Shown one piece after another: positions 44,914 to 57,755 of a DNA stretch of 60,071 bases. Under the pieces are notes generated by a model. The model ran no database searches, was not told the DNA's origin, and saw only the letters and a program-made list of their open reading frames with translations. Each line of letters opens with the position of its first letter. Positions within the stretch are counted from its first letter, which is position 1. The stretch is from Octopus bimaculoides (Eukaryota): NCBI RefSeq assembly GCF_001194135.2, contig NC_069007.1, forward strand, positions 16,985,340 through 17,045,410. Direction: 5' to 3'. Made by a program: the position numbers and the translations under genes.

Positions 44914-44954
44914 TCAGGTAACCCTAGTGACAATGCTGCAATATGGCTTCAACC
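44914..44954 (-). CDS. Minus gene candidate terminal exon (RLKPYCSIVTRVT*)
   Basis: 79-nt intron with U-rich tract plus CAG; phase 1 matches; TGA at 44916-44914. Confidence 0.55.
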
Positions 44955-46800
44955 CTGAATGATTTGAAAATTTAAAAGAAACAAAAAAAACACCCTAGAA
45001 TTACTAACAGCAACAAAAAGACAGTACACTTACTTGTAACTTTTTTGCGTACGCATCTGCAGTATTCATACTTGAATACCAAGCCTTTGGCACAGTGCTG
45101 CACTTTATGTCCAGCACGAGCAACCGGATTGTAATATTTGGTAGTATCACCTAGGAGAGATTGCAGGTGGCACAAACTACCATATTTTCTCTGGAAGAGA
45201 ACAAATAAGAAATATATAACCTTTCCTTGTTTCTTCTAAAAATATGTGAATTTATAAGCCACACACATACATTATATATATATATATACACACATATACA
45301 TACACCTACATACACACACACACATCTAATATATTAAATGCGAAAGCTAATTTCTGTGTGTCAGTGTGTCACGCTTTCACCCTCTCTTTCACTATTCAAT
45401 GACACTTCTGCTGATGATGATGTTTTATTAAAAGTAGTAGTGTTGATGGTAGCAGTAGGAGTAACAATAAGAGAAAGAGGGACTGAATACTGAATTGATG
45501 CTTTGTTTTGACCGCATGTTTGGAGATGACCCACTGGGAGCAAGTGAGGACGAGCTTTTTTGAGCCACATTTTCTAGGCCCTTCCCCACATGGGGCAGGC
45601 AGTGCTATCCCTGAAAAGGGTTGCCTGGATGCACAATATATATATATCTATATATATATAATAATAATATTGGGGATAAAAATCCTAATTTACAGGTAAA
45701 AACTCATTGGTTCTTTTCTCTAATATTATATATTATATTATATATATATATATATATATNNNNNNNNNNNNNNNNNNNNNNNNNNNNNNNNNNNNNNNNN
45801 NNNNNNNNNNNNNNNNNNNNNNNNNNNNNNNNNNNNNNNNNNNNNNNNNNNNNNNNNNNNNNNNNNNNNNNNNNNNNNNNNNNNNNNNNNNNNNNNNNNN
45901 NNNNNNNNNNNNNNNNNNNNNNNNNNNNNNNNNNNNNNNNNNNNNNNNNNNNNNNNNNNNNNNNNNNNNNNNNNNNNNNNNNNNNNNNNNNNNNNNNNNN
46001 NNNNNNNNNNNNNNNNNNNNNNNNNNNNNNNNNNNNNNNNNNNNNNNNNNNNNNNNNNNNNNNNNNNNNNNNNNNNNNNNNNNNNNNNNNNNNNNNNNNN
46101 NNNNNNNNNNNNNNNNNNNNNNNNNNNNNNNNNNNNNNNNNNNNNNNNNNNNNNNNNNNNNNNNNNNNNNNNNNNNNNNNNNNNNNNNNNNNNNNNNNNN
46201 NNNNNNNNNNNNNNNNNNNNNNNNNNNNNNNNNNNNNNNNAAAGGTTGTTTAACGTTTCGAGCAGACGCTCTTCTTCAGAAACAGGAGACAGTGGAAAGA
46301 CCAAGAGAAAAGGAAGACGGAGGAAAAAGATCGCCCAACAATCCACAGGTATATATGTATTTATATACATATACATGCACACACACGTATATATATATAT
46401 ATGAATGTATGTATATGTACCTCTGCAGCTGAAAGTAAATTTAACAACAGTGATTGCATTTTGGTTTTTTCACTGTCTTCTTCGTCTTTTTCTTCTGCTT
46501 CCTCTTCTTCGTCTTCTTCTTCTTCTTCTTCTTCTTCTTCTGCATTATCATCTTCTTCTTCAGCTAGTTCATCATTTTCTAGACCGTTTCTGTTATTTTC
46601 CTCTTCTGCAATATTGTTTCTGAATCTAAGAATCACTCTGTCAGCTGAAAAAATGGAAGTATTGTAAATCAGTGCTGAGAAAATGTAGTAGAAATGAAAT
46701 CATTTAGTAAATGTCTTCTGTTGCAGCTTCAAGCTGACCAATGACGTGTGGGTAAATTTGTGAGTGAATTTGGTGGGGACAAACACAGACACACAAGCAT

Positions 46801-46841
<41 letters not shown>

Positions 46842-56424: not shown

Positions 56425-57575
56425 AAGAATGAACCCTGGCAGGAACCCCATAATAGCAGCCAATTCTCCCTCAAATCACAGCTTCTGCTTTGTAAGAACG
56501 AGCCAAGGTAGGAACCCCAAAATAGCAGCCAATTCTCCCTCAAATCACAGCTTCTGCTTTGTAAGAACGAGCCAAGGTAGGAACCCCAAAATAGCAGCCA
56601 ATTCTCCCTCAAATCACAGCTTCTGCTTTGTNNNNNNNNNNNNNNNNNNNNNNNNNNNNNNNNNNNNNNNNNNNNNNNNNNNNNNNNNNNNNNNNNNNNN
56701 NNNNNNNNNNNNNNNNNNNNNNNNNNNNNNNNNNNNNNNNNNNNNNNNNNNNNNNNNNNNNNNNNNNNNNNNNNNNNNNNNNNNNNNNNNNNNNNNNNNN
56801 NNNNNNNNNNNNNNNNNNNNNNNNNNNNNNNNNNNNNNNNNNNNNNNNNNNNNNNNNNNNNNNNNNNNNNNNNNNNNNNNNNNNNNNNNNNNNNNNNNNN
56901 NNNNNNNNNNNNNNNNNNNNNNNNNNNNNNNNNNNNNNNNNNNNNNNNNNNNNNNNNNNNNNNNNNNNNNNNNNNNNNNNNNNNNNNNNNNNNNNNNNNN
57001 NNNNNNNNNNNNNNNNNNNNNNNNNNNNNNNNNNNNNNNNNNNNNNNNNNNNNNNNNNNNNNNNNNNNNNNNNNNNNNNNNNNNNNNNNNNNNNNNNNNN
57101 NNNNNNNNNNNNNNNNNNNNNNNNNNNNNNNNNNNNNNNNNNNNNNNNNNNNNNNNNNNNNNNNNNNNNNNNNNNNNNNNNNNNNNNNNNNNNNNNNNNN
57201 NNNNNNNNNNNNNNNNNNNNNNNNNNNNNNNNNNNNNNNNNNNNNNNNNNNNNNNNNNNNNNNNNNNNNNNNNNNNNNNNNNNNNNNNNNNNNNNNNNNN
57301 NNNNNNNNNNNNNNNNNNNNNNNNNNNNNNNNNNNNNNNNNNNNNNNNNNNNNNNNNNNNNNNNNNNNNNNNNNNNNNNNNNNNNNNNNNNNNNNNNNNN
57401 NNNNNNNNNNNNAATAGCAGCCAATTCTCCCTCAAATCACAGCTTCTGCTTTGTAAGAACGAGCCAAGGTAGGAACCCCAAAATAGCAGCCAATTCTCCC
57501 TCAAATCACAGCTTCTGCTTTGTAAGAACGAGCCAAGGTAGGAACCCCAAAATAGCAGCCAATTCTCCCTCAAAT
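56425..57575. repeat. 69-bp minisatellite array with an internal gap (56632-57412)
   Basis: Unit aatagcagccaattctccctcaaatcacagcttctgctttgtaagaacgagccaaggtaggaaccccaa on both sides of the gap. Confidence 0.92.
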
Positions 57576-57696
57576 CGCATCCTCTGTCTTTCGTGAGGAA
57601 ACGAGGTGAAAAATATGAGAAGGTCATTGGTGGAGTACATTTGTCCATATGTTTGTTGGATCAGGGCTGAGCTAGAGCAAAGCAACAATAACTTAC

Positions 57697-57755
57697 CTAA
57701 CGACAGAGCTGGTCCTTGTGTGGTAGGGGTCTTACTCTTCATTTTAAAATGTCAC
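57697..57755 (-). other. Minus gene candidate exon 1 (5'UTR, or in-frame N-terminal extension MKSKTPTTQGPALSL)
   Basis: TAG/GTAAGT donor at 57696; TATAAAAA about 30 nt upstream; ATG at 57742 splices in frame to exon 2. The 5' end is approximate. Confidence 0.55.

Follow-up and report, generated by a model that had tools for sequence, protein, structure and literature searches.

The 60,071-nucleotide window of Octopus bimaculoides DNA, that is, the whole stretch analyzed here, contains one real, transcribed gene on its minus strand, which extends over positions ~43935-57763 and comprises 10 exons. The gene product is probably a secreted protein carrying four small cysteine modules, reduced relatives of the CBM14 domain. 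Spliced O. bimaculoides RNA contigs from two independent runs contain every junction and match each exon without mismatch, and the O. sinensis orthologue LOC118768312 (protein P0001, 539 aa) is collinear with the gene. In the 10-exon model, the total coding sequence of 1689 nt is in frame and predicts a protein of ~546-562 aa. Gaps, SINE copies and simple repeats are abundant in the region, and a fold-back duplication adjoins one gap, as might be expected if the gene model were an artefact of chance open reading frames or mis-assembly; this explanation is, however, already refuted by the transcript contigs, and both the collinear orthologue and the lack of the module pattern in shuffled sequence speak against it. 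An Rfam search matched no RNA family in the window.

Following the transcript along the minus strand, exon 1 (57697-57763, GT donor) contains 5' UTR and, at 57742, an in-frame upstream ATG (MKSKTPTTQGPALSL, followed by the opening base of the codon after it). It is defined by RNA contig X2, the loose end of which behind 55197 reads AACGACAGAGCTGGTCC... and equals the window from 57699 over 65 nt, the contig starting at ~57763. A second ATG (MALRSILVTLFFAYTFFDYTESTS) lies in exon 2 (55122-55195; X2 contig positions 68-141, no mismatch), which encodes a hydrophobic, signal-peptide-like segment (GRAVY +0.73) with 100% identity to residues 1-24 of P0001; the O. sinensis protein begins at this ATG. 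Exon 3 (53705-53870), joined to exons 2 and 4 through loose ends of RNA contigs, encodes module 1 with the spacing C-x25-C-x10-C-x-C. Exon 4 (51206-51778) is exactly covered by contigs X1 (depth 322) and X2, whose loose ends match 50145 and 53705, and encodes a basic, Lys/Ser/Thr-rich mucin-like linker of 191 aa with an acidic tail. Module 2 resides on exon 5 (50005-50145; 90% identity to P0001 residues 262-309), which is connected by junction 51206>50145 and placed by contig arithmetic directly before exon 6. The latter (EKEDKPESKDIWKKPIKEELATILQPPTILSTETAKKS; 48663-48775, 113 nt, contained in X1 and X2 contig pieces) encodes a 38-aa spacer with 84% identity to P0001 residues 308-345. Downstream of exon 7, which is discussed below, exon 8 (46421-46644, RNA pieces 46516-46644 and 46421-46532) encodes a 75-aa acidic poly-Glu segment, and exon 9 (45034-45190, donor ACAA/GTAAGT at 45034, X1 and X2 pieces joining 46421 and 44153) encodes the last module, module 4. 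Exon 10 (43935-44153, X2 contig piece) provides the last 12 codons (IHWKKILPYIYI), the stop codon at 44116-44118 and a 3' UTR with AATAAA. Residues 527-539 of P0001 match window positions 44119-44157, and P0070 shares the same ending. Of note, exon 10 lies outside the stretch described in the earlier note on this DNA.

That note had joined seven exons into a gene with three modules in total. The seven-exon model has AG/GT borders and an open frame of 480 aa, and its junctions 57697>55195, 51206>50145 and 46421>45190, among others, are present in transcripts. In contrast, its junction 50005>46644, leading from module 2 directly to the poly-Glu segment, is absent, and the RNA inserts exon 48663-48775 plus 157 nt at this point. 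The shorter model remained in frame because the two exons it skips add up to 270 nt, which is divisible by three. Similarly, the last module had been read through to a stop at 44972, whereas the RNA splices 45034>44153 and the protein ends in ...IHWKKILPYIYI before the stop codon, in agreement with the orthologue. The hydrophobic C-terminus KCTVFLLLLVILGCFFCFF was rejected, since the RNA splices elsewhere and the stretch represents a polypyrimidine intron, as was an alternative acceptor ACAG/AGTG for the poly-Glu exon, given that the contigs start this exon at 46644. The notion of a real spliced gene, for a protein with a signal-peptide-like N-terminus and repeated cysteine modules, is upheld, but the exon count, the module count and the C-terminus had to be corrected.

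All five flagged assembly gaps fall into transcript introns, and four of them are crossed directly by spliced RNA contigs: junction 57697>55195 crosses gaps 55513-55968 and 56632-57412, junction 51206>50145 crosses gap 50545-50668, and junction 46421>45190 crosses gap 45760-46240. At the joint 46644>48663, both X1 and X2 have 157 letters in between that are absent from the window, and gap 47448-48076 thus hides a coding exon. The hidden exon 7 corresponds to 52 codons plus 1 nt, a length that preserves the frame. No part of the window matches residues 346-396 of P0001 (YVYIPVCQRSSCVDDPTKYFEQVPGHGFYLRSCPKGTAFNPIHCQCSIHYGNS), and the O. sinensis counterpart of the missing exon is an additional, fourth module with 5 Cys. 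Judging from its length and this counterpart, exon 7 of O. bimaculoides must encode a fourth CBM14-like module, the third in order, and we expect it to have AG/GT borders and a module near YVYIPVCQRSSCVDDPTKYFEQVPGHGFYLRSC...CQC. The window is 100% identical to CM046627.1 of GCA_001194135.2, where the gap is still open, and word-indexed protein searches, started from the module alignment or from the middle part of the orthologue, yielded no match for the hidden exon. Because one module exon is concealed in this gap, the gene is broken in two in the O. bimaculoides annotation, with models of 400 aa and 148 aa flanking the gap; the O. sinensis gene is annotated as 'uncharacterized'. The locus had rightly been suspected to be poorly annotated. 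Literature searches on LOC118768312 and LOC106882050 found nothing, and a search on octopus sucker and cuticle chitin-binding proteins found no paper on this gene. Public RNA data allow the correct 10-exon structure to be stated, which repairs the gap-split RefSeq gene.

A six-frame scan of the window for the strict pattern C-x25-C-x10-C-x-C returned exactly 3 matches, compared to 0 in 100 shuffles. As had been described, all three window modules, with 4 Cys each, have identical cysteine spacing, YY at +12/+13, G at +20 and GxxF after the second Cys, and each is encoded by its own exon (exons 3, 5 and 9). The intervening segments are indeed segregated by charge: by composition, the 191-aa linker has a net charge of +13 and contains 64 Ser+Thr, and the 75-aa poly-Glu segment has a net charge of -27 with 34 acidic residues.

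Canonical CBM14 (peritrophin-A) domains have six conserved cysteines forming three disulfides. According to profile comparisons and structure predictions, the octopus module is a derivative of this domain with a reduced set of cysteines, as the earlier note had supposed. In the HMMER comparison with Pfam CBM_14 (PF01607, gathering threshold 22.1 bits), the window protein stayed under the cut-off, scoring 11.7 bits (E 0.29) with its last module only, and its single modules gave no match. CBM_14 was the only Pfam family recurring with single modules across the set of homologues (12 of 60 at E<=1, best E 0.0017), and one cuttlefish-type relative, P0002, exceeded the gathering score when summed over its modules (48.4 vs 22.1 bits). 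The module profile also finds bona fide CBM14 proteins, for example P0013. Aligning 60 modules with canonical 6-Cys CBM14 domains in hhalign yielded a probability of 95.8% and an E-value of 6.7e-9 over 39 columns, figures that are optimistic given that the canonical set was taken from the module profile's own matches. A profile search of PDB sequences retrieved weak CBM14 matches (E 0.2-1.4) among chance ones, including a coronavirus spike motif. At the structural level, AlphaFold predicted a common four-strand layout for module 1 (pLDDT 76) and module 4 (pLDDT 73.5). Foldseek ranks 1-10 for module 1 were all CBM14 structures, comprising CHIT1 (5hbf, rmsd 1.1 A over 41 columns), Aplysia EHEP, Avr4, Der p 23, Blo t 12 and the NMR structure of the CHIT1 CBM14 domain, and ranks 1-6 for module 4 were likewise CBM14. 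Tachycitin (1dqc), proposed beforehand as the structure to compare, ranked 13th for module 1 and 6th for module 4. The top matches of these predicted models had TM scores of 0.59-0.66 and rmsd values of 1.1-1.6 A, with E-values of 0.08-0.6 that are individually not significant because the domain is short. The predicted module shares with CBM14 a hairpin followed by two short strands, the aromatic pair of the hairpin and a C-x2-G-x2-F motif, and CBM14 Cys 1, 4 and 5 align. Compared to CBM14, it lacks Cys 2, 3 and 6 and the C-terminal 'DWP...C' tail in the hhalign alignment, whereas a new Cys two residues before the last generates the C-x-C signature.

The 4-Cys derivative is common to cephalopods, bivalves and gastropods. 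We counted ~99 module instances in 36 representative mollusc proteins, in which the x10 spacer and the C-x-C are invariant. The module occurs most often alongside canonical CBM14 domains in Pif-like proteins, and its architectures include VWA-CBM14-CBM14-module-LamG 'PIF-like' proteins as well as mucin-like tandem arrays. When compared with the segment that separates CBM14 from LamG in PIF-like proteins, the module profile gave E-values of 1e-4 to 1e-8. At this very position, a 'CB-like' or CBM_14L domain has been described in Pif/BMSP proteins (Suzuki et al. 2009, 2013, as cited in PMC11291548). The same 4-Cys module sits between canonical CBM14 and laminin-G domains in PIF-like proteins of Mytilus, Solemya and Sinanodonta, the Pinctada Pif sequence lying outside this comparison, and the Pif link drawn in the earlier note thereby gained substance. 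The module is also found in LamG-containing proteins of Haliotis and Octopus. Unlike Pif and BMSP, the octopus protein has no VWA, canonical CBM14 or laminin-G domain and carries four modules in tandem, separated by low-complexity linkers. Neither VWA nor LamG had a Pfam match in the window protein, and the O. sinensis orthologue has no precomputed Pfam domain. The octopus protein does have a poly-Glu block, but the LG flanks that P0026, P0040 and P0046 show are missing from it.

In its overall layout, the octopus protein also resembles peritrophins, invertebrate intestinal mucins and arthropod cuticle proteins of the CPAP type, which combine a signal peptide and several small, Cys-knotted modules of the chitin-binding type with Ser/Thr-rich mucin-like linkers. 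The octopus protein has repeated modules and the Ser/Thr-containing 191-aa linker, while its hydrophobic N-terminus would be a putative signal peptide and its modules putative chitin binders. Compared to arthropod peritrophins, the octopus modules have 4 rather than 6 Cys, the protein has a long poly-Glu block, and the lineage is molluscan. Taking these data together, we favor, with a probability of roughly 60%, the reading that the 10-exon gene with its reduced-CBM14 modules encodes a multivalent matrix protein that coats or cross-links chitin. The order of parts is a signal-peptide-like N-terminus, module 1, the 191-aa linker, module 2, the 38-aa spacer, module 3, the poly-Glu segment, module 4 and a short basic/hydrophobic tail. 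Four putative chitin-binding modules, each of them weak, would be spaced by flexible linkers of opposite charge, yielding a peritrophin- or mucin-like matrix protein of high valency. Such a protein may coat or cross-link the chitin fibrils of one chitinous structure, leaving its acidic block free for cations or basic partners; beak, radula, sucker cuticle, stylet and statolith, named in the earlier note, would be hypothetical sites. Hypothetically, the matrix of chitinous structures in cephalopods could include multivalent chitin binders of this type, with charged linkers.

Because EHEP, which is built from CBM14 domains, was crystallized with tannic acid (PDB 8in6), the fold is no guarantee of chitin binding. 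The octopus modules could have kept the fold and lost the chitin, turning to a different ligand, for example polyphenols or other glycans after the manner of Aplysia EHEP, or linking proteins to one another as adaptors; on this view, a secreted, mucin-like protein would capture food-derived or matrix molecules. EHEP (8in6, 8in3) comes first or nearly first among the structural matches, and over 34 columns of module 4 the identity amounts to 32%. Three canonical cysteines as well as the CBM14 C-terminal tail are gone, and in P0012 and P0038 the module stands beside EGF_CA in proteins without any other chitin-related domain. However, an aromatic pair of the chitin-binding type and the G-x-x-F strand are invariant or nearly so across modules, and the commonest company of the module is canonical CBM14 in Pif-like proteins. 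We regard a change of ligand as unlikely, while granting it a real share of the probability. Aplysia kurodai EHEP (25 kDa, PDB 8in3/8in6), deposited as a polyphenol-binding protein and the top structural match for module 4, is, like the predicted octopus protein, a mollusc secreted protein with several CBM14-fold domains; it differs in its ligand, tannic acid according to the PDB title, in its canonical domains and in having no long charged linkers.

The density of acidic residues in the poly-Glu block and the sharing of the module with Pif/BMSP-like shell proteins would also fit a protein that acts mainly in a biomineral matrix, for instance that of the statolith. By analogy to Pif97/Pif80, poly-Glu might bind calcium or calcium carbonate, with the modules anchoring the protein to an organic scaffold, and the cuttlefish relatives P0005 and P0008 have linkers rich in Ser, Asp and Glu. 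We consider such a role improbable, as VWA and laminin-G domains are missing, the largest linker is basic and mucin-like rather than acidic, and octopuses have hardly any calcified tissue. Less probable still is a tachycitin-type lectin, immune or antimicrobial in function, directed at fungal or parasite chitin and not at that of the animal itself. The structural match to tachycitin would agree with it, but a long chain of several modules with mucin-like and poly-Glu stretches between them is typically met in structural matrix proteins, not in small antimicrobial peptides. Moreover, the transcript was detected in only 2 RNA runs of O. bimaculoides, with a contig depth of 322 in one of them, which suggests strong and restricted expression; such a very high level in one sample fits a specialized secretory tissue.

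As a tentative proposal, C-x22-28-C-x10-C-x-C could represent a distinct, mollusc-wide CBM14 offshoot without a curated family, whose first Cys would be re-wired into a disulfide with the Cys newly gained in C-x-C and whose ligand may have changed. The octopus gene would then be a lineage-specific matrix protein of one chitinous or lightly mineralized structure (sucker lining, stylet, beak, radula or gut cuticle), in which alternating basic and acidic linkers might drive self-assembly or coacervation on chitin. The module is marginal in Pfam and appears as 'CB-like' in the Pif literature, and a family of its own would better annotate many 'uncharacterized' or 'mucin-like' mollusc proteins. Among these are tandem paralogues with 4-11 copies of the module, all of them uncharacterized, in Acanthosepion pharaonis (CAE1286147.1, CAE1286153.1), O. 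bimaculoides (LOC106876448) and, as 'mucin-5AC-like' proteins, Mytilus and Mizuhopecten. Their linkers are acidic, Ser-rich or Thr/Pro-rich and unlike those of the octopus gene in chemistry, and their first spacer mostly comprises 24 residues compared to 25 in the octopus gene. In LOC106876448, C-C-C takes the place of C-x-C.

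RNA contigs established the gene as a transcribed, ten-exon unit on the minus strand and exposed one exon that the window does not contain. Two public RNA runs of O. bimaculoides, X1 (2015) and X2 (2023), contain the complete linker exon, and the contigs assembled from them (1240 nt, depth 322; 1420 nt, depth 37.5; and two further contigs of 346 and 491 nt) matched the exons without a single mismatch. They documented the minus-strand junctions 57697>55195, 55122>53870 (with exon 2 itself covered), 53705>51778, 51206>50145, 46421>45190 and 45034>44153, while 50005>48775 was derived from contig arithmetic. 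Between 48663 and 46644, also on the minus strand, the contigs carried 157 nt absent from the window. The transcript ends near 43935, downstream of an AATAAA signal. An artefactual gene model is excluded by these transcripts. Four of the five flagged gaps (45760-46240, 50545-50668, 55513-55968 and 56632-57412) were spliced over, as was the gap at 44564-44663. The fifth flagged gap, 47448-48076, sits between the two exons that border the 157 missing letters and must therefore hold a coding exon. Including this exon, the coding sequence comprises 1689 nt in frame and encodes 562 residues from the ATG at 57742, or 546 residues from a strong second ATG (MALRS) in exon 2.

These data revise the earlier note, which had described seven cleanly joining exons encoding three modules. 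All its exon borders are AG/GT and its 480-residue frame is open, but its exon count was wrong: the two missed exons add up to 270 nt (113 + 157), a multiple of three, which accounts for the clean joins of the shorter model. The note had proposed looking for transcripts with its junctions; the contigs do cover the gene, yet they depart from its model at 50005>48775, at the 157-nt insert and at 45034>44153. The last of these junctions also replaces the proposed C-terminus, as the hydrophobic end of that open frame is intron. Likewise, the count of three modules gave way, a fourth being expected in the gap-hidden exon.

The sole full-length relative found, the uncharacterized protein LOC118768312 isoform X2 of Octopus sinensis (539 aa), matches the ten exons collinearly, with only residues 346-396 lacking a counterpart in the window. 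This stretch makes up a fourth, five-cysteine module (YVYIPVCQRSSCVDDPTKYFEQVPGHGFYLRSCPKGTAFNPIHCQCSIHYGNS); at 52 codons plus one base, it agrees in size with the hidden 157 nt. In the part compared, the window, gaps included, is identical to GCA_001194135.2 CM046627.1 at ~17.02-17.04 Mb. The public O. bimaculoides annotation breaks at the exon-7 gap into two gene models (1-8110 and 10001-12588 of L001, from CM046627.1). The upstream product has 400 residues and ends just past exon 6; the downstream product, XP_052833104.1 (LOC106882050), has 148 residues, begins with a false Met taken from the intron and covers exons 8-10. Calling the gene hidden and poorly annotated was thus fair, and the present finding corrects the split annotation.

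The modules in the window are each encoded by one minus-strand exon (53705-53870, 50005-50145 and 45034-45190) and share, as first described, the C-x25-C-x10-C-x-C spacing, YY at +12/+13 past the first Cys, G at +20 and G-x-x-F past the second Cys. Scanning all six frames of the window with the strict pattern returned exactly these three matches, compared to none in 100 shuffles. The charge segregation of the linkers was equally confirmed: the 191-residue Lys/Ser/Thr linker, which passes from a strongly basic beginning to an acidic end, has a net charge of +13, and the 75-residue poly-Glu segment one of -27.

As to the proposed kinship to CBM14 (PF01607), Pfam assigns no family to the window protein (CBM_14 at 11.7 bits, E 0.29, vs a cut-off of 22.1). 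Four further kinds of evidence agree in making the module a CBM14 relative. First, AlphaFold models of module 1 (pLDDT 76) and the last module (73.5), built from a seven-sequence alignment, adopt the same hairpin-plus-two-strands layout. In Foldseek searches against the PDB, CBM14 domains took places 1-10 for module 1, including human chitotriosidase 5hbf (rmsd 1.1 Å over 41 columns), Aplysia EHEP, Avr4, Der p 23, Blo t 12 and the CHIT1 CBM14 NMR structure, and places 1-6 for the last module, with tachycitin among them. The E-values of 0.08-0.6 are singly not significant for so short a domain, and the weight lies in the consistency of the matches. Second, a seven-module profile retrieved 52 of 1.84 billion representative proteins at E<=0.001, bona fide CBM14 proteins included; against PDB sequences alone, it gave weak CBM14 matches among chance matches. 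Third, 12 of 60 non-redundant modules scanned singly matched CBM_14 (best E 0.0017), no other family recurring, and an eight-module relative (P0002) passes the CBM_14 gathering score with 48.4 bits. Fourth, hhalign aligned the 60 modules to canonical six-cysteine CBM14 with a probability of 95.8% (E 6.7e-9), a value that is probably inflated, since the search that supplied the modules also supplied the canonical set. In this alignment, the module's second cysteine aligns with CBM14 cysteine 4 and its fourth with CBM14 cysteine 5, CBM14 cysteines 2, 3 and 6 have no counterpart, and the third module cysteine is new.

The pattern C-x22-28-C-x10-C-x-C occurs ~99 times in 36 of the representative matches, with x10 and C-x-C invariant, and all species-named matches to the module profile are molluscs. 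The matches include cuttlefish tandem arrays (Acanthosepion pharaonis CAE1286147.1 and CAE1286153.1), the octopus paralogue LOC106876448 with Pro/Glu/Thr linkers, "Mucin-5AC-like" proteins of Mytilus and Mizuhopecten, EGF_CA-containing proteins, and many proteins of the order VWA-CBM14-CBM14-module-laminin-G, named "PIF-like" by RefSeq in Mytilus and having similar proteins in Solemya, Sinanodonta, Haliotis and Octopus sinensis. At this position between CBM14 and laminin-G, publications on Pif describe a "CB-like" domain, recently named CBM_14L1/L2 because its Pfam score is only marginal (PMC11291548). This makes the module a variant of a known domain, one that can be recognised but has no curated family. 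The finding points to a four-cysteine CBM14 form widespread in molluscs, not to a novel type of system. A Pfam scan of the octopus window protein found neither VWA nor laminin-G domains, so it is not a Pif/BMSP member. Within the LOC106876448 paralogue family, modules are spaced by (PETEPTG)n-type linkers; LOC106876448 and relatives (P0007, P0009, P0014) carry 9-14 modules in which C-x-C has turned into C-C-C.

With its hydrophobic N-terminus, four CBM14-type modules, basic Ser/Thr-rich linker and poly-Glu block, the octopus protein resembles peritrophins and mucin-like chitin-matrix proteins. We infer chitin binding and consider the protein probably (about 0.6) a secreted, multivalent chitin-associated matrix protein, which retains the gist of the cephalopod chitin matrix protein first envisaged but not its exon and module count or C-terminus. 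A serious though distinctly less probable rival is that the modules have changed ligand, since EHEP, the best structural match of one module, is built of CBM14 domains and was crystallised with tannic acid. A mineral-matrix role exerted via the acidic block appears unlikelier still, and a role as immune lectin is improbable. The presence of the transcript in only two O. bimaculoides RNA runs, in one at high depth, suggests that the gene is strongly expressed but limited to a particular tissue or stage.

Several further features were observed in the window. In intron 1, a perfect 96-nt inverted repeat (55315-55410 / 55417-55512, arms 6 nt apart) stops right at the gap starting at 55513 and appears to be an assembly artefact of the fold-back type, formed at a contig end, and not a biological feature. 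In the same intron, the gap 56632-57412 is flanked on either side by a 69-bp tandem array (56441-56631 and 57413-57591; 96-99% matches) and probably holds further copies of this minisatellite. SINE-like intronic repeat copies with a common ...CCATGTGGTTGGTAAGCAAGCTACTTACCACACAGCCACTCC... occur at 46850-47447, 48084-48400, 48900-49310, 50232-50860 and 52852-53375; several adjoin gaps, and their word depths reach 100 to 1000 times exon depths in RNA and DNA runs. Directly upstream of exon 1, a long ACC/CAC-type low-complexity tract (57790-58700) gives rise, on both strands, to spurious ORFs rich in Thr or Val. Finally, two long plus-strand open frames, 14290-14631 and 21407-21802, resemble by eye exons of a gene for a DBHS (NONO/SFPQ/NonA-type) RNA-binding protein, one with a coiled-coil segment and the other with a Gly-rich C-terminus.
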